Sequence record: LC819005.1
Reading direction: 5' to 3' (one strand)
Length of the DNA: 64,000 bases
Shown: one piece after another, positions 1,966 to 38,895 of the stretch
Position numbering within the stretch: position 1 is the stretch's first letter
How the letters are laid out: the number at the start of each line of letters is the position of its first letter
Notes under the pieces: generated by a model
The model's input: the letters and a program-made list of their open reading frames with translations, nothing else
Told to the model about the DNA's origin: nothing
Database searches by the model: none
Position numbers and translations under genes: made by a program

Positions 1966-3357
1966 TTACTTCGCAGCAGGCTTGGCTTTCGACACTTCGA
2001 CCGATTTCTCGACGTAGCGAATGAAAGACGCGGCGTTCTGGATGTTCACGCGCAGCAGCTGCGGCACGACGACAGTCGCGATAGCGGTGAGCGTCTTCAG
2101 ATACAGCTCGACCATCTTCACCGACTGACCGCTTTCTGCGACCTTGGCAAAGCCTTCGATCTTGGCGAGACGATCGGCCAGATGGTTCTGGTCGGCGTTC
2201 CACTTCTTGACGAGTGCGAGCATGTCGGTGGCGAGCTTCTTCTCCACCACGGGGATGCTGCCGCCTTCAACGAGCGGCACTTCACCCGGAGCGACACCAG
2301 CCTTCACGACACCGCCCTGATCCATCGGCTTCGAGAAGGCGAGGTACAGTTGCAGGCCGCCGATCTGCGGCTCGGTCATGCCGCCTTCGAGCTGTGCATT
2401 GCTCGTGAGCTTGGGCTTGAGTTCGCTGACGATCGAGTCGGGGATCTTCGAGTATTCGAACACGTGCTGGCGCAGACCACCGAGGATCTTCGACAGTTCG
2501 ACGTACACCGGCAGGGCGTCTTCTTCGCCCTTCTTGGCGGTTGCCGACAGTGCGTTCAGGAACGAATCGTTGAAGAAGCCGTAGAGCGTCTTCGTGGCGA
2601 ATTCGGCGTAGCGACGGAACTGAGCGTTCGCATCGCCTGCGTTCTTCACCATACGCAGCGACTTGATGAACGCTTCGTCGTCGATCGTGGCATTGCCGTC
2701 GATCTGGTTGACGGCTGCGAGCGCGCGCTCGGCCTTGGCCGTCAGACCGTTGAACTTCTGCGCGATGCTGCGCACGACGTTGACGATCCAGGCGATGATC
2801 TTCTTGATACCGGCGAGCAGACGATCGAGAATGCTCTTCGACTTTTCCTTCGCTGCAGCACCGACGGCCGCCACTTGACCTTCCGGTCCGGCTTCGGCAA
2901 CGTCGCTGTCTTCCAGAGCAGCCAACGCATTGGGGATATCCACGCGCAGACAGATCTGTTCGAGTGCCATGGCGTAACCCGCCACGGTGGCCTTGTTGGC
3001 CTGGCCGGTCTTCAGCGCCATATCGCAGATGTAGGCGAGCTCTTCCAGAGCAGCGCCGGCGGAAACAGCTTCTTCCAGATCCTGATTGACGGAATCCGAC
3101 GTGTTGCTGATTTGTTCGACATCGTTATCGAACACTTCGCCCGACAGGTCGTCGTTTTCAGCAGCGAGCGTGGAGTTCTTTTCCATCAACGTGGCGACAG
3201 CATCCGTGTCGGAGTCGATGTTGGTTTGCGTAACGGGCGGAGCGCCCGCGCTGCCTGCCTGCAACTGAGCGACAGAGTCAACTGCGGATACATCCGTGCT
3301 CGCCTCTTGCTGCAGCTCTTCCAGAGCGGCAGTAATGAAAGGACTGCGTTTTTTCAT
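1966..3357 (-). CDS. Internal head protein paralog (start MKKRSPFITAALEE)
   Basis: Several ALE sites in an acidic propeptide, then helix ILDRLLAGIKKIIAWIVNVV. Start placed at 3357 by analogy with the neighbours. Confidence 0.8.
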   Translation of the reverse strand: MKKRSPFITAALEELQQEASTDVSAVDSVAQLQAGSAGAPPVTQTNIDSDTDAVATLMEKNSTLAAENDDLSGEVFDNDVEQISNTSDSVNQDLEEAVSAGAALEELAYICDMALKTGQANKATVAGYAMALEQICLRVDIPNALAALEDSDVAEAGPEGQVAAVGAAAKEKSKSILDRLLAGIKKIIAWIVNVVRSIAQKFNGLTAKAERALAAVNQIDGNATIDDEAFIKSLRMVKNAGDANAQFRRYAEFATKTLYGFFNDSFLNALSATAKKGEEDALPVYVELSKILGGLRQHVFEYSKIPDSIVSELKPKLTSNAQLEGGMTEPQIGGLQLYLAFSKPMDQGGVVKAGVAPGEVPLVEGGSIPVVEKKLATDMLALVKKWNADQNHLADRLAKIEGFAKVAESGQSVKMVELYLKTLTAIATVVVPQLLRVNIQNAASFIRYVEKSVEVSKAKPAAK

Positions 3358-3442
3358 GGTGTCTTGTCCGACTAGGTTATCAATGGAGGTCCGTTGAGTA
3401 CACATACCCACGGGAATTTGAGCCTCGATCACAATATAGCCA

Positions 3443-4911: not shown

Positions 4912-4946
4912 GTTTATCTCAGTTCTTGAAGTCGATGGAGGCTTCA

Positions 4947-20400: not shown

Positions 20401-21672
20401 TTAACTTGCGCCGAGTTGTGCTGCGCGCACGAAGAGATCGTTGGCAGCCAGGCTTTCGAGACGGTCCGTGTACTCACGCGAGGCACGGGCATCCATCTTG
20501 CCACGACGGAGCATGTCCATGAATTTGACGATCAGCGCCGGGTCCGTATCACCCCGGTAACCCTGGATGATCTTGTCGGTAAGCTCGATGCTGGCGATTT
20601 CTTCCAGCAGCTCTTCCTTGGGCAGATCCATCGTCTTGATCTTCTCGACGAACTGGTTGCGCATCTTCGTTGCGTTCTGCTTGAAGGTCGTGATATCCGG
20701 CGCGTTACCGGCGTCCTTGAAACCGCTGAAGACTTCGTAGCCACCGAAGAGCAGGATACCCAGACCGACGGGTCCCAGGATCGGCGTCGTGATAATACCG
20801 AAGAGGGCCCAACCGAGACCCTGCAGGATACCGTAGCTGCGCGGCTCGCCGCCCATGAACTTCGCACGCATCGTGACGATCGCGCGGCCTGCGCCGTGAC
20901 GGGCTGCGAAGATGTCGGCGAGTTCTTCTGCGGTGTCCATCGAGAAGTAGCGCTTGTTGTCGAGCTTGCGCGGCTCGATTGCCACAGCGGTCGCCAGCAC
21001 ACGGAAGGCCACTTCGGCCGACGCGTTCTCGTCGATGCTTTCCAGCCAGTCCTTGTTGTCGATGGCCATGTCGTCCGCGGCCTTCGTCAAGATCAGCTTG
21101 ACCTTCTTGTCGGCTTGACCGTTGGTCAGTTCCGCCCAGGTACGCTGAAGCACGATGCTGGTGACGACCGTGTCGGTGAGGAACTGCAGGAACGTGTAGG
21201 CGTGACCCACTTCGTGCAGAATCACCCCCGCCGTTTCTTCCGGCGTGAACGTCGTGCCAAACAGGAACATCTGACCGATGAACATGCGATGCATGATCTC
21301 GGAGAGCGCGCCACCGACGCGGGCGTTCGCCGGGTCGATCCAGCCCTTCTTCTCCAGGTTGTAGAAGGAAAGCTTGTCGGCGTTGAAGTTCTTTTCGAGG
21401 AACTTGTTGAGTTCCGCACGGTTCAGCGCATTGCCACGCGTGAGCGACGGAATCATCACACAGGCGTTGTCGTAGTTGGGGATCACGCGGGCATTGGTGA
21501 GAATGCCGGTGTGCTCGTACACACACTTGTCGATGCGGACGCTGAACTTGTTGACGGCGTCTTGTGACTTATCGCCAGCCGCACGCACATCCTGGACGAT
21601 CAGTGTAAGGGCCTTGAAAAAGGCGTCGGACTGGAAAGCAATGCTTTCGTTCCCGATGAAGAGGAGGTTCAT
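20401..21672 (-). CDS. Virion protein with a zincin HEXXH motif and hydrophobic segment (phiKZ gp84-like)
   Basis: ILHEVGHAY, downstream EELADIFA, and a hydrophobic stretch GILQGLGWALFGIITTPILGPVGLGILLFGG. Confidence 0.75.
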   Translation of the reverse strand: MNLLFIGNESIAFQSDAFFKALTLIVQDVRAAGDKSQDAVNKFSVRIDKCVYEHTGILTNARVIPNYDNACVMIPSLTRGNALNRAELNKFLEKNFNADKLSFYNLEKKGWIDPANARVGGALSEIMHRMFIGQMFLFGTTFTPEETAGVILHEVGHAYTFLQFLTDTVVTSIVLQRTWAELTNGQADKKVKLILTKAADDMAIDNKDWLESIDENASAEVAFRVLATAVAIEPRKLDNKRYFSMDTAEELADIFAARHGAGRAIVTMRAKFMGGEPRSYGILQGLGWALFGIITTPILGPVGLGILLFGGYEVFSGFKDAGNAPDITTFKQNATKMRNQFVEKIKTMDLPKEELLEEIASIELTDKIIQGYRGDTDPALIVKFMDMLRRGKMDARASREYTDRLESLAANDLFVRAAQLGAS

Positions 21673-27037: not shown

Positions 27038-27356
27038 GTGGAGGACATCTTAACGTAGTTGGTCGATTACGCTGCTGTTACTACCCAAGGGGCAGGTTCC
27101 TGCAAGTGGATTGAATGCCTTCGTCCTTTTGCGGGATACTGGCATTCGAACCGTACAAATTGTGAAAGAGAAGAGCACCGCGTCTCCCGACGTGGGTGCG
27201 ACTCTGTGGATTCTACGGAACGTGATTGGACTTCCAAATGATTACTTCTTAACGGCATGCCCTGTCCGCGCATCAGTCTCAGTGTCTTTTGCCTTCGCCG
27301 TGTCCCTGAGGATTTACGGCCATTACGCGACGTTCGAGACCTTACTTCGTTTCCAC
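27038..27356 (-). ncRNA. Candidate structured non-coding RNA, about 320 nt
   Basis: ORF-poor gap. 5' GTGGA pairs with 3' TCCAC, an H-type pseudoknot is possible, a TATG ends exactly at the first base, and an intrinsic terminator follows. Confidence 0.4.
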
Positions 27357-27376
27357 ATAACATACGCTAAGCACTG

Positions 27377-27724
27377 TTAATTTTTACCCTGCCCTTTCTT
27401 CATCTCATTCAAGAGATCGTTGAGCTCCTGGGTTTCTTGAGGTGCGTGCTTTTCCATCACCTCCAGCATCAAGTCGCACATGTAGGGCGGCTGATTCAGG
27501 AACTCCGTAAAGGACATGTGAAACGCCGTTCCAACCCGAAGGTCACGGAACGCTTCCATGCGCTCGCGCAAGCGAGAGGCGACGATCGTATCCTCACACC
27601 AGTGATGTCTCACCAAAGCGAAGTGATCGTCGGGTTGTCCACGATGGTCGTAGATACCATGCGCCTGCTCATACCGCTCCCGCATCAAGATCTGTACGTC
27701 GGTGCTCACGAACCTTTTGGGCAC
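27377..27724 (-). CDS. Small tail/baseplate assembly chaperone-like protein; possibly the -1 frame extension of 27820-29553
   Basis: MSFTEFLNQPPYMCDLML resembles T4 gp51/GT-type chaperone tails. The frame stays open upstream past the slippery site with no other start codon. Confidence 0.65.
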   Translation of the reverse strand: MPKRFVSTDVQILMRERYEQAHGIYDHRGQPDDHFALVRHHWCEDTIVASRLRERMEAFRDLRVGTAFHMSFTEFLNQPPYMCDLMLEVMEKHAPQETQELNDLLNEMKKGQGKN

Positions 27725-27819
27725 GCGAGCAATGTCTCCGGTGTACTCCTCGATCAGGACGCCGTCGCCGAACTTCCAATCCCCAACATGCTTGGAATGG
27801 GCAATTTCGGCTTCGGTGG

Positions 27820-29553
27820 TCAGCGGCGGCTGATGATATCGACGCGCTGCGCGAGTAGGGTAAAAAAAGTGTTCACCACATCGAGCGGAATCAGGTGCGG
27901 GAAGCGGGGCAGACCCATTTCCTTGCCACTGGTTTCCGGGATCGCGACCAAGGCACGAGTTGAGTCGTCCTTGAACTTGTTGATCGCTTCTTCCAGGATG
28001 GCGGTGGCTTCCTCGTCCATCGACAGCACGTTCAGAATCTCCGCGATGTCCTCGCGGCTACTCGTTTCATGCCCTTCGATGAAGATCGACTTGATCCACG
28101 CACCGTTGTTCCGCAGACGCGACGCCTTGGCGTGCGTAGCGATCATCCGGTTGCGTTCCTGTTCGTTCGGGGCGGCCTGCGTGAACGTCGAGTCCACGGT
28201 CTGCACGATACCGGCGATCCAGTGCTCACCATCAGCGATGTAGTTGTCCACATCGGTTGCAGCCACCAGCACTTCCAGACCCTCACGGATCTTGACGCGC
28301 CGGCCCTGCGCCAGCGACGGAATGAACGTCGACTGGTATTCCTTCACGCGATCGAGCGTCATCGAACCACGCTGGCGGCTAACCATGTGGGAGCGATGCT
28401 TGGCGTCGAAGCTGGCGTTGTCCACCCACATCAGCTTGGCGATGTTGATCTTGGCCGAGATCGTCTGGGTATTCTCGATCCCTTCCTTGGTCACCAACGA
28501 GCGCACGTAGTCGAAACCACGCGGCCAGATGAGACACGCCATGCCCCAGAACAGGATGTTCAGATCCTGAATCTTGATCAGTGAACGCAACTCTTGATTG
28601 CTGTCCACCCGCACGCTGTGTTCGTAGATGTGCTCGAAACAGAAGTCGAGCAACCAGCTGTTGATGTAGCTCTGCTCGTTGGAGAACACCAAACCAAAGG
28701 TCTCGCGACCCAGCTCGATCTTCTCTTCCTGCAGACGACGTTGCAGCTCGATCAGCGACGACTCGGTCGGCGCCGACAGCGTGATCCAGAAGCCCGAGTG
28801 CCACAGCGGAATCGAGACGATACCACCGAAGCCCATGATCGAGCGCACCCGCAGGATCGCCTTCTCGCCGGTGTAACCACTGGCGCCAGCTTCTGCGAGC
28901 CGCGGCGGCGTAAAGCCGAGCTTGCCCGATTCGGTTTCCAGATACTGCAGGTAATTACTGCCTTCAGCTTTGACGGACGATTCGAAACGTCGATCGATGA
29001 ATACACTGCGCGAAGCAGCGGCCACGATCGACTGGTTCCAATCCGCACCTTTGCCGCTGCGCAAGGCATTCGGCGAGACGAACGCACGAATGCGCTCGTC
29101 GACTTCCTTGCCACGTTCAGCGAGGAAGAACATCACTTCGCTCGTCCCGTTCAGGTCCGTGCGATCGGCCAGAGGCACCGGCTGGCTGGCGTTGTATTCC
29201 ATCGTCAGCGTCACGCCCTTGTTCTCCGAGGGCTCGAACGTCAGGCCCTCGTAGTCGGCGTGCACGGCATCGGCCGCACCGATGTTAAAGCCGCCGCCGG
29301 TGGTTTGACCCACCAGCACCGGACGATCCTTCTGGTCCTTCGGCTGCGCTTGCGGAGCTGCAGCGGCCTGCTGCTGGGCAGGCGCAGCTGCTTGTGCTTG
29401 AACAGGCGCTGCCGGAGCAGCAGCCTGCGGTGCAGGTGCCCGGATGGGCGAGGGGACCTTCACCACCGGGTCCTGAGCAACCGGCTGGGCCGGCAACTCA
29501 GCTTGCGGGGTGACGTCGATCCCGGCCTGCACTTGATCGTTATTCTCACTCAT
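27820..29553 (-). CDS. Conserved hypothetical protein, putative tail/baseplate-hub assembly chaperone (T4 gp26-like segment)
   Basis: 577 aa with a P/A/Q-rich N-terminus. QDLNILFWGM resembles the gp26 DxxYLF motif. Ends just after T TTT TTT. Confidence 0.65.
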   Translation of the reverse strand: MSENNDQVQAGIDVTPQAELPAQPVAQDPVVKVPSPIRAPAPQAAAPAAPVQAQAAAPAQQQAAAAPQAQPKDQKDRPVLVGQTTGGGFNIGAADAVHADYEGLTFEPSENKGVTLTMEYNASQPVPLADRTDLNGTSEVMFFLAERGKEVDERIRAFVSPNALRSGKGADWNQSIVAAASRSVFIDRRFESSVKAEGSNYLQYLETESGKLGFTPPRLAEAGASGYTGEKAILRVRSIMGFGGIVSIPLWHSGFWITLSAPTESSLIELQRRLQEEKIELGRETFGLVFSNEQSYINSWLLDFCFEHIYEHSVRVDSNQELRSLIKIQDLNILFWGMACLIWPRGFDYVRSLVTKEGIENTQTISAKINIAKLMWVDNASFDAKHRSHMVSRQRGSMTLDRVKEYQSTFIPSLAQGRRVKIREGLEVLVAATDVDNYIADGEHWIAGIVQTVDSTFTQAAPNEQERNRMIATHAKASRLRNNGAWIKSIFIEGHETSSREDIAEILNVLSMDEEATAILEEAINKFKDDSTRALVAIPETSGKEMGLPRFPHLIPLDVVNTFFTLLAQRVDIISRR

Positions 29554-29568
29554 GTTGCGAGTTCCTGG

Positions 29569-30372
29569 TTACGCCGGTTCGGCTTCCGTTTCAGCAGCGG
29601 GTGCAGCTTGCGGATCTTCGGGGACCGGTACGGGATCAGCGCCCGTCGTATCGGCGACGATGTTCTTGATCTTCGCGAGATTCGACATCAGGCTGTGGTT
29701 CAGCTGGCTGGCGAGGTCGGGGTTGGTCTCCTTCAGCGCGATCAGAGCTTCTTGCAGCTGCTCCGAAGCGTGCACGACGATCGGCATCAGCGCCGAGTCG
29801 TAGCGTTCCATGAACTGAACGTATTCCGAGAACACCGCGCACGAGATCATCAGATCTTCCTGGCTGGTAGCGCCGGCGTCCTTGTCCTTGTGCTGGTTGC
29901 GGATCTTGTTCAGTTCTTCGACCAGACGCTTCGTGTCGTTCGTGATCGCATGGATGTTACGCGAGAGCAGGCGCTTGTTACGCACCTGCTCCAGCAGTTC
30001 TTGTTCGCGCAGCAGCGGCACGAGCGCGAGCGACGTACGCAGCAGGTCGACGCAGGCGAGGTAGATGCCGTTGACTTCGGCCCAGGCGTTGTTGGTCGCG
30101 AAATAGTGGTCCGCGTGCTTTTCCCACGAACGCTTCTCGCCCTTACGCGAGCGCTGGTCCTTGCCGATCGTGCCCTTGCCCATTTCCATGACGGCGTCGG
30201 ACAGGAGCTTCTTCGCGCGCGGCGACGGCACGGCGGCCGCTGCCGTCATCAGTTGACCTACCGTGGCGATCGCGGCGACGGAGTCTTGTTGCTGTTCTAC
30301 TTCTTTCAGCTGGGCAGCCGGCGTCTTGGGCCATTTGATGCCCGGATTCTTGGGTCGGGATTTCTTTGCCAT
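29569..30372 (-). CDS. Conserved hypothetical helical protein
   Basis: 267 aa with typical codon usage. First gene of the minus-strand operon. Confidence 0.7.
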   Translation of the reverse strand: MAKKSRPKNPGIKWPKTPAAQLKEVEQQQDSVAAIATVGQLMTAAAAVPSPRAKKLLSDAVMEMGKGTIGKDQRSRKGEKRSWEKHADHYFATNNAWAEVNGIYLACVDLLRTSLALVPLLREQELLEQVRNKRLLSRNIHAITNDTKRLVEELNKIRNQHKDKDAGATSQEDLMISCAVFSEYVQFMERYDSALMPIVVHASEQLQEALIALKETNPDLASQLNHSLMSNLAKIKNIVADTTGADPVPVPEDPQAAPAAETEAEPA

Positions 30373-30551
30373 GATAGTGGTTTGGTGAATCTGGGGTGTT
30401 GATGGAACATGTAATGTGGCGAATCTTTTGACACGTCGAAAAAATGACGTCCGCCAAATACAGCACTACAGAATTTCAAGCTAGGTAAATAATTACATGC
30501 AAACTATTTACCTACGATTTGGGTTCTATAGAAAGACATGAGGAAGTTTAA

Positions 30552-36820: not shown

Positions 36821-36842
36821 TCTTCTAAAAGGAGAAGCGACT

Positions 36843-37685
36843 ATGGCGATGACGAAATCGCAGGTCAAACAACTGCAACGTGCGTTGCGTGAAACGGTGA
36901 TGCCCAATATCTCCGTGGACGGCGCATGGGGCAAGCAGTGCGACGATGGCCTGGCAGCCTATGCTCAGACCACCGGCACAGATACGGCGGGCGCTACGGC
37001 CCTGCTCACGGCTTATGCGGAGCTGCGTTTCGTCAATGACGATGCGTTCGCTACCGCTGCTGCGGCTCTCAGTGTTCCCGAGAGTTATGTACGAGCTATC
37101 GCTCAGGTGGAGACCAACGGCGATGGTTTTCTGAAAGACGGACGCGTCAAGATCCTGTTCGAGCGGCACTGGTTCTACAAGGACCTCACCGCAGCTCTTG
37201 CTACGTCGTCCGATGCGCGCGCCCATGTGGCGGCGAAGCTGGGTATTGCTACGCAGTCCACTGTCTCCCAGCTGATGGCAGAGATGGTCAAACAGCAGAA
37301 TAACATCTGCGACCCGACCCGTGGCGGCTACAAGGGCAATGAACTGGAGTGGGATCGTCTGAACCTGGCGATGGACTACGACGTCGAAGCAGCCGCGCAG
37401 TCGGCTAGTTACGGTGGCTTCCAGTTGATGGGCTTCAACTTCAAGCAGTGCGGTTATCCCAATGCGCGCGCGATGATGATTGATCTCGCGGGTTCGGAGT
37501 CCAAGCAGTTCCTGGCTGTGGTGGCGTTCATTAAGGCCAACCCCAACCTGCTCTCGGCGGTGCGAGCAGCAGACTGGGCGAAGTTCGCCATGGGCTACAA
37601 CGGTTCCTCGTACAAGGAAAACAAGTACGACACCAAGCTGGCTGATGCAGTCACTGCTTTCAACAAGCAAACTGCACTGGCTTAA
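36843..37685 (+). CDS. Modular endolysin: peptidoglycan-binding domain plus N-acetylmuramidase (DUF3380/PF11860-like)
   Basis: VKQLQRAL...VDGAWG binding motif, AQVETNG, ILFERHWF, SYGGFQLMGFN and DWAKFAMGYNG. Confidence 0.9.
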   Translation: MAMTKSQVKQLQRALRETVMPNISVDGAWGKQCDDGLAAYAQTTGTDTAGATALLTAYAELRFVNDDAFATAAAALSVPESYVRAIAQVETNGDGFLKDGRVKILFERHWFYKDLTAALATSSDARAHVAAKLGIATQSTVSQLMAEMVKQQNNICDPTRGGYKGNELEWDRLNLAMDYDVEAAAQSASYGGFQLMGFNFKQCGYPNARAMMIDLAGSESKQFLAVVAFIKANPNLLSAVRAADWAKFAMGYNGSSYKENKYDTKLADAVTAFNKQTALA

Positions 37686-37704
37686 GCAAAAAAAAAAATA
37701 GCGA

Positions 37705-37748
37705 CATAAGCAGAGAGAAACGACCTCACGGTCGTTTCTCTCTTTATG
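37705..37748. terminator. Bidirectional terminator
   Basis: AGAGAGAAACGACC/GGTCGTTTCTCTCT stem with CATAA/TTATG flanks. Confidence 0.85.
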
Positions 37749-37758
37749 CCGTTAAGGC

Positions 37759-38895
37759 TTAGCGGGCAGCTTGCACACCGGCGGCGAACTCGTTCAGTTC
37801 CTTCAACAGACGAGCCGTGTAGGTAGCTGTCAGTTGAATCGGGCTGAACCAGCGCGGATGCTCGGGGTCCTTGTCCGACAGACCCACCATGTACACCGCG
37901 AGGTTGTCCGGTTCGAGGTGCGGCAGTGACCAGACGAGGATCGTGGTCTTCAAACGCACCACCACCGAGGCAGGCAGCGAATCACCGGCGAAGAAACCGC
38001 TCGGCAGGCCAGCCTTGTCTTGCGCCGCCAGTTGCAACGGATTGGCACGCTTGTACCACTTGAAACCATCCGAGCCTACCGTGATCGTACCGCGACCATT
38101 CGGCAGCCACGGACCGGCGGCGAAGATGTCGAGCAGCGGCGATTCCTGGCCGAAGATGATGCTGAGGCTGTTCTGCGCTGGTTCGGTGATTTGCACTTGC
38201 GCGACCGATGCATCGTTCAGAGCCTTGACGGGCGGCAGACCACCCGAGGTCGGTGCGAGGCTCAGGTCGACCGGCGAATGAATCGCCATACCAGCCGACG
38301 TCGACGCCGACGTGTAATCCGCTTCGCTCAGATCGAGCTTTTGCAGATCCTGGCGACGCGCTTCTTGTTCAGCTGCGTGAGCGGCGGCAGCGGCGCGTGC
38401 ACCACTAACCGTCGGCGTGCCGTCGGGCAACGTACCCGGCGCCGTGGGCGGAATCGTGCGACCAGCAGTCGGTTCATCGATTTCACTAGCCGGCGAGTGA
38501 TCCATGCCTTCAACAGGCGGCGGACGACGCGAGGCCAGTGCGGCTTGTGCAGTGTTTTCACGCAGGCGGGCGATGGCTTCGTCCAGCGTAGCGGCCGACG
38601 CGGCAGCCGCATCGACAGCCGGCGTTTCTTTGCCGCCGATCGAGTTCCGATAAGCTTGCAGGTGATTCGAGTAATACGCAGCCATCGATTCCAGATTGTC
38701 CTTGACGTTCTGGATATCGACGAGACCTTGCTTGGTCAGGATCGTCGGGCAAGTGTCACTACCCGGTTGCCACTGCACGGCGTCGCGCAGTACCGTTTCG
38801 AGAATCTTGTTCGCGTTGTCGGCAGCACGCGTGATCGCACCGTGGAGAAACTCCAGACGCTGTTGAACCGATTGATGGATATTCGTGTCGGACAT
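37759..38895 (-). CDS. Hypothetical protein with a Pro/Ala-rich central region
   Basis: 378 aa ORF downstream of the helicase, converging on the endolysin at a bidirectional terminator. Confidence 0.7.
   Translation of the reverse strand: MSDTNIHQSVQQRLEFLHGAITRAADNANKILETVLRDAVQWQPGSDTCPTILTKQGLVDIQNVKDNLESMAAYYSNHLQAYRNSIGGKETPAVDAAAASAATLDEAIARLRENTAQAALASRRPPPVEGMDHSPASEIDEPTAGRTIPPTAPGTLPDGTPTVSGARAAAAAHAAEQEARRQDLQKLDLSEADYTSASTSAGMAIHSPVDLSLAPTSGGLPPVKALNDASVAQVQITEPAQNSLSIIFGQESPLLDIFAAGPWLPNGRGTITVGSDGFKWYKRANPLQLAAQDKAGLPSGFFAGDSLPASVVVRLKTTILVWSLPHLEPDNLAVYMVGLSDKDPEHPRWFSPIQLTATYTARLLKELNEFAAGVQAAR

Follow-up and report, generated by a model that had tools for sequence, protein, structure and literature searches.

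The minus-strand locus at 27377-29553 of Ralstonia phage FLC1-1B raises the question of whether its adjoining genes, gp276 and gp275, are two genes or one. The window analyzed here, a stretch of 64,000 nt, is 100% identical to the FLC1-1B record (LC819005.1). An earlier note on this DNA proposed that a programmed −1 frameshift joins the 577-residue product of gp276 to the downstream open reading frame (ORF), a proposal that is strongly supported by the comparison of orthologs described below. We conclude that gp276 and gp275 are probably a single recoded gene, expressed through −1 ribosomal slippage on the heptamer T_TTT_TTT.

The 0-frame ORF, gp276, spans 27820-29553 and comprises 577 codons followed by a TGA stop (27822-27820). 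The proposed shift site (27862-27868) is made up of the last base of an ACT codon and two Phe codons; read in the 0 frame as ACT TTT TTT ACC, it is an in-frame X_XXY_YYZ heptamer 13 codons 5' of the stop, as the earlier note had recognized. Both the Z_ZZN tetramer and the X_XXZ_ZZN heptamer are recognized classes of −1 motif (PMC4066793). The −1 frame is open from a stop at 28060-28058, the closest one upstream (locus position 4944, equivalent to window position 28057), down to 27377. The part of this frame between the run and its own stop (27377-27862) contains 161 codons plus the stop codon; its first 46 codons, which include no ATG, GTG, or TTG, lead straight into the 115 codons annotated as gp275 (27377-27724), which begin with a GTG at 27724 preceded by a GGAG 11 nt upstream (27739-27736). 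Thirteen codons (27823-27861) are used by both frames: in the 0 frame they encode the conserved helical tail at the C terminus of the short product, and in the −1 frame they begin a linker.

Under the proposed mechanism, most ribosomes would read through T_TTT_TTT in the 0 frame and terminate 13 codons further on, releasing the 577-residue protein (64 kDa). Some ribosomes would move back one base with two tRNA-Phe on the run, a step in which all base pairs would survive, and would thereby exchange the last 13 residues, which form the C-terminal helix, for a variable and flexible linker followed by a predicted all-helical domain of ∼135 residues. The long product would then comprise 564 + 161 = 725 residues (∼80 kDa), and the arithmetic of the earlier note is correct on this point.

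A single T7 run in FLC1-1B is not beyond chance, as the window contains seven matches to T7-type runs compared with 5.6 expected, all the others being intergenic. The significance of the site therefore comes from comparison with relatives. The gp276 protein matches PHROG 4585 (expect value, E, 4.5e-130), and according to record notes the members of this family include phiKZ gp77, 201phi2-1 gp136, PhiPA3 gp074, and EL gp47; cross-references in the records identify 201phi2-1 gp135 as the downstream partner of gp136. Judged by these matches, the gp276/gp275 pair belongs to the phiKZ gp77 / 201phi2-1 gp136 / PhiPA3 gp074 core family and its gp135-type downstream partner. Homologs were found by tblastn in 214 phage records with hosts including Pseudomonas, Erwinia, Salmonella, Serratia, Ralstonia, Vibrio, and Klebsiella, and the annotation was “hypothetical protein” or missing in all 60 of the tblastn rows sampled. 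Loci were gathered from IMG/VR with a three-member alignment query (47 loci) and from 15 phage records; an IMG/VR query built from the 201phi2-1/PS119XW pair returned 201phi2-1 alone. The comparison set comprises 60 loci, of which 51 were placed automatically and 9 were analyzed separately, with GC contents of 27-58% and identities of 22-100%. Counts of stop-free frames and of Shine-Dalgarno-like elements use 47 non-redundant loci.

The same Phe-Phe motif, located at the start of the last helix, is spelled by a run of five to eight T residues (T5-T8) in 60/60 loci, and in all 60 the −1 ORF is open for 150-192 codons from the run. The 0-frame stop lies 8-37 codons 3' of the run (13-14 codons in 32/51 loci). 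Among the 51 automatically placed loci, the run is T7 in 34, T8 in 7, T6 in 7, and T5 in 3, and the heptamer is T_TTT_TTT in 35, T_TTT_TTC in 7, G_TTT_TTT in 5, and non-canonical in 4. A canonical T_TTT_TTT or T_TTT_TTC is present in 42/51 of these loci, and the others have at least T_TTT. The spelling of the motif departs strongly from codon usage, with TTT TTT occurring in 40/51 loci versus 10.3 expected from the Phe usage of each gene, and in 19/26 genomes with a GC content of at least 0.5 versus 1.8 expected. Outside the run, the two FLC1-1B ORFs use TTT 5 times and TTC 24 times.

The reading frame downstream of the run is similarly constrained. The first conserved motif of the downstream domain is separated from the run by 15-96 nt, with 14 distinct spacings that all preserve the −1 phase. 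From the run up to the 0-frame stop, no stop codon interrupts the −1 frame in 47/47 loci versus 26.6 expected by resampling of synonymous codons, whereas the +1 frame over the same interval is stop-free in 27 loci versus 25.7 expected, as by chance. Where the GC content is low, the −1 frame is closed by a stop lying 2-6 codons 5' of the run, and in one instance immediately adjoining it. Synonymous identity is 0.66 in the overlap versus 0.52 in the gene body, and the ∼80 nt from just 5' of the run to the stop contain one mismatch between FLC1-1B and its relative RP12, the genes overall being 77% identical. No ATG, GTG, or TTG occurs in the −1 frame from the run to the first conserved domain motif in 44/51 loci, and the whole open −1 frame 5' of that motif is start-free in 39/51; in one locus (L024) no start codon of any type appears until codon 136 of 161. 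Codon bias, missing starts, constant phase, and an open −1 frame together argue that the run, the phase, and the open frame are selected and are not by-products. The signal, the −1 phase, and the absence of start codons are conserved across the whole phiKZ gp77 family, and the site, which annotations lack, occurs in this core gene in each of the related nucleus-forming jumbo phages examined. The earlier note had called for an alignment of orthologous loci, and in this alignment the T run, the phase, and the open, coding, start-less linker are all kept.

Departures from the common arrangement were observed in a few lineages. In L035, L036, L038, L039, L041, L009, and PhiPA3 (L059), the run is cut to T5-T6 or the second Phe is replaced, leaving only a T_TTT-type tetramer, with the −1 ORF intact. 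The first five of these loci still have no start before the conserved motif, and L009 and L059 have only TTG there. In Xanthomonas phage RTH11 (L008, OQ790161.1), the deposited sequence has the gene body in one frame, the conserved C-terminal tail in a second, and the downstream ORF in a third, which amounts to one frameshift in the gene; the upstream ORF as annotated runs on to 627 residues, overlapping the downstream ORF. This discontinuity could be a homopolymer miscount or real variation.

The earlier note held that the last 30 or so codons of the linker look like coding sequence, and the downstream domain family bears this out. Residues 17-160 of the 161-residue −1 piece match PHROG 12109 (147 positions; E 3.4e-49); the domain match therefore begins 30 residues 5' of the annotated GTG and covers the start-less part. 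In an alignment read by eye, the codons 5' of the GTG differ between FLC1-1B and RP12 mostly at third positions, and on both counts the linker 5' of the GTG reads as coding sequence. An alignment of −1 pieces places a conserved His-Val..Pro.Phe-Gly motif at the beginning of the all-helical domain, which is modeled with low confidence (predicted local distance difference test score, pLDDT, 67; predicted template modeling score, pTM, 0.35). We consider gp275 as annotated to be an N-terminally truncated call of the −1 ORF, and it is one of many such calls. Gene callers assign the downstream protein 100-149 residues in close relatives, with scattered starts; the RP12/RP31 homolog is annotated with 146 residues from an ATG that overlaps the upstream stop, and this ATG is missing in FLC1-1B, FLC4-3B, and the metagenomic relative L010. 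A profile search with the downstream domain returned 1141 representative clusters, of which the best 150 are all 97-180 residues in length, and a table count indicates that about one-third of these start at least 10 profile positions inside the domain. In phage OMKO1 (L058, phiKZ-like; 2925-3440), the downstream ORF is annotated with 80 residues, and its frame is open for 91 codons more, beginning four codons 5' of a T7 run. More than half of the downstream domain lacks annotation in the phiKZ-like genomes. Gene callers systematically misplace the start of the downstream ORF, and in about a third of the best-matching clusters the called start falls within conserved sequence.

Several observations weigh against a programmed ribosomal shift, some bearing on how the downstream ORF is initiated and others on the signal itself. 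An ATG is found at or just 3' of the 0-frame stop in RP12/RP31, where it overlaps the stop, and in several close relatives, where it stands just 5' of the conserved motif. Overlapping stop/start arrangements of this type produce a −1 phase, and the GGAG 11 nt 5' of GTG 27724 means that the earlier note's caveat about independent initiation in FLC1-1B stands. The downstream ORF could accordingly be a separate gene with no recoding, translated by coupling or re-initiation near the stop, from a canonical or near-cognate codon or from the annotated GTG, the T run merely encoding Phe-Phe. We consider this quite improbable, given that 44/51 loci have no canonical start before the conserved motif, that the first start in L024 comes as late as codon 136 of 161, and that initiation at the FLC1-1B GTG would drop 30 conserved residues, yielding a domain predicted to be without its conserved N-terminal motif. 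A separate gene also leaves unexplained the retention of the T run against codon bias, the maintenance of an open −1 frame 5' of the 0-frame stop, and the fact that every linker indel is a multiple of three. In RP12/RP31 and other ATG-bearing relatives, the shift may operate alongside independent or coupled initiation.

With regard to the signal, ten loci offer nothing beyond T5 or a non-canonical heptamer, and U_UUU_UUU is far less shift-prone than A_AAA_AAG in Escherichia coli (PMC5009743, review). A downstream RNA stimulator was rejected because RNAalifold predicted 0 pairs on 37 diverse sites, the 99 nt 3' of the FLC1-1B run folded no better than shuffled sequences (z = +0.30), and windows of 40, 60, and 90 nt 3' of the site showed no excess stability over windows taken elsewhere in these genes. 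An upstream Shine-Dalgarno-like stimulator was likewise rejected, being present at 1/47 loci versus 2.7 expected, and a search of 27200-28200 against Rfam gave no match. The small CGCG-CAG-CGCG hairpin described in the earlier note does exist on the minus strand at 27843-27853, but it is neither conserved nor significant in these folding tests and is unsupported as a stimulator. Since no stimulator was found, the run alone must carry the signal, which suggests that the efficiency of the shift is low. The case as a whole rests on sequence comparison, and the trans-frame product is a predicted one.

A pure homopolymer is equally a site for slippage by RNA polymerase, and the phage multisubunit enzyme or the host RNA polymerase might add one U in some transcripts, giving rise to the same long product. 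The lack of a detected translational stimulator is consistent with such a mechanism, as is the avoidance of UUUUUUU in all three frames of E. coli genes, for which one suggested cause is transcriptional slippage (PMC4066793). The length of the run (T7-T8 in 41/51 loci) matters more visibly than flanking elements, and the frame discontinuity of RTH11 would imply that polymerases or sequencers, at the least, do not keep this length constant. Bacterial RNA polymerases usually slip on runs of 9 or more, whereas the runs of the gp77 family are T5-T8, with none longer and some of only 5-6, and with few exceptions they place the two Phe codons in the P and A sites, with canonical heptamers in 42/51. 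Transcriptional slippage is on balance somewhat unlikely, although the comparative data cannot separate it from ribosomal slippage. We favor the ribosome as the slipping agent because the P and A sites would hold two Phe codons at almost every locus.

Both products of the proposed shift seem to have been retained. Across loci, the amino acid sequence of the 0-frame tail is conserved, and the gp276 model ends in a confident C-terminal helix (559-576). The 57 close homologs of the upstream protein (all 488-581 residues) include no in-frame fusion, and neither do the best 150 of the 1141 downstream-domain clusters (97-180 residues), from which we infer that both products are needed. These findings also bear on whether the locus is one gene split by a homopolymer sequencing error or a recent frameshift mutation. 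Homopolymers are error-prone, and the RTH11 record has a frame discontinuity in the same gene; however, the identical phase in 60 loci from independent projects already contradicts an artifact or decay, as do the conservation of the 0-frame tail and stop, with the tail modeled as a confident helix, and the lack of in-frame fusions among the homologs listed. We regard this explanation as extremely improbable.

Addition of a C-terminal domain by −1 recoding is well known, and what is new is its family-wide presence in a Chimalliviridae core gene. In agreement with the earlier note, which knew of no such report in the Chimalliviridae, a search of open-access papers and preprints revealed no paper reporting a frameshift in a gp77-family gene, and no sampled record annotates one. 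Literature matches to “gp77” were rejected as unrelated genes of Goslar, PhiPA3, and PCH45. If ribosomal recoding holds, the two hypothetical proteins annotated separately in more than 200 jumbo-phage genomes would be the two products of one recoded gene; among these genomes are those of phiKZ-like candidates for therapy, for example OMKO1. With only a U run and no stimulator detected, the signal is minimal, and it has been kept from Vibrio to Ralstonia hosts over the 27-58% GC range, making the gp77-family site a potentially useful natural case for how little set-ratio recoding needs.

The neighbors of gp276 in FLC1-1B are the RNA polymerase beta' subunit gene and genes for hypothetical proteins, with no tail genes among them. 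Antisense ORFs lie opposite gp276 at 27437-28243 (plus strand, 268 residues) and 28594-30402 (plus strand, 602 residues); these most likely reflect GC-driven open frames rather than genes. Just 3' of the −1 ORF stop is an intergenic motif of ∼20 nt beginning TATGTTATGTGG (27345-27364, minus strand), which is conserved in FLC4-3B, RP12, and RP31 despite diverging flanks and may be a phage promoter or other regulatory site. A promoter/terminator scan of the gp276/gp275 junction gave nothing relevant. Farther along the window, a perfect 12-bp hairpin, 13 nt, and a T11 run follow one another at 37688-37740 on the minus strand, between the minus-strand ORFs 37759-38895 and 36825-37670, and this arrangement looks like an intrinsic terminator.

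The function of the pair was approached through fold and profile comparisons. The model of the 577-residue protein is good (pLDDT 76.9; pTM 0.76). Pfam gave no match, including for seven diverse family members at E ≤ 5, and neither a PDB sequence search nor a PDB fold search with both models produced a match. A Foldseek search of predicted viral structures (BFVD) with the 577-residue model retrieved, after orthologs, proteins annotated as “Baseplate hub assembly protein, T4-like” and “Baseplate hub subunit,” with borderline scores (E 3.6e-3 to 7e-2; template modeling score 0.44-0.51 on the target). Matches to tail assembly chaperones were weak and not significant (E 0.75-5, probability ≤ 0.44) and include phage G gp181/gp182, which are listed within gp178-183, a block whose members include a tail assembly chaperone as well as a tail chaperone made by programmed frameshifting (PMC12484599). 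The likeness to T4 gp26/gp51 hub chaperones that the earlier note had suggested thus has borderline fold support from Foldseek, but it lacks sequence support from Pfam or hhalign. T4 gp26 and gp51 both belong to Pfam PF12322 (T4_baseplate), to which the family has no match; homology by profile comparison was rejected as not significant (hhalign probability 0.2-15%), and in the profile alignment only a Cys-Pro-x-Cys motif near the C terminus aligns. The records of 201phi2-1 gp136 and gp135 are without the virion mass-spectrometry note that is present in the gp138 record. Because the profile comparison is not significant, the neighbors are not tail genes, and gp136/gp135 have no such note, the idea that the pair acts like T4 gp26/gp51 in assembly of the baseplate hub or tail is a borderline lead drawn from structural models and not a membership.

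Put in its most general form, the proposal would be that all nucleus-forming jumbo phages (Chimalliviridae) make a trans-frame protein of ∼80 kDa, as yet missing from annotations, from a bare U run and that the gene is the missing T4 gp26/gp51-type hub or tail assembly factor, a proposal that we find possible but doubtful. If true, the tail-assembly frameshift that is nearly universal in long-tailed phages would also occur, much enlarged, in the Chimalliviridae. The frameshift would offer a concrete, checkable handle on this core gene, together with a first hint of a role in hub or tail assembly.

The proposed recoding can be set beside several known systems. At dnaX and IS3-family sites, A_AAA_AAG is accompanied by a Shine-Dalgarno-like element and a downstream hairpin or pseudoknot, and in dnaX the shifted product is the shorter one. 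The gp77-family site is instead a U run at which neither a Shine-Dalgarno-like element nor a structure was found. It shares with E. coli dnaX tau/gamma and with IS3-family orfA-orfB a predicted −1 slippage on a homopolymeric X_XXY_YYZ and two products in a set ratio (PMC5009743).

The T4 hub genes provide a comparison at the level of proteins. A Cys-Pro-x-Cys near the C terminus is common to gp26 and most chimallivirus members, the Goslar hub closely resembles the T4 hub, and T4 gene 26 has two nested products, annotated 26 and 26'. In contrast to the gp77 family, T4 has no frameshift, its second product being a shorter coding sequence with the same stop, and the T4 proteins are only 208-249 residues long. 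In the T4 record (L066, NC_000866), gene 26 lies at 20803-21429 on the minus strand, with the nested 26' sharing its stop, and the T4 gene 26 family may have in this another way to make two related proteins.

If a gp26/gp51-like role holds, the pair would work like lambda G/GT. The earlier note invoked the lambda G/GT type of tail chaperone; the family is at most a candidate for that class. The gp77-family pair is not beside the tape-measure gene in FLC1-1B, RP12, 201phi2-1, SPN3US, and others; in SPN3US, the tape measure is gp239 and the pair is approximately gp39/gp40 by locus-tag arithmetic. The upstream protein of the gp77 family (507-656 residues) is also 4-5 times larger. The resemblance lies in the organization, which the gp77 family shares with lambda G/GT and with the tail assembly chaperone −1 frameshift of long-tailed phages (PMC5009743): the 0 frame terminates shortly past the slip site, the downstream ORF lacks its own start, the major product would be short and the minor one long, with a common N-terminal body, and the arrangement is conserved where the sequence is not.

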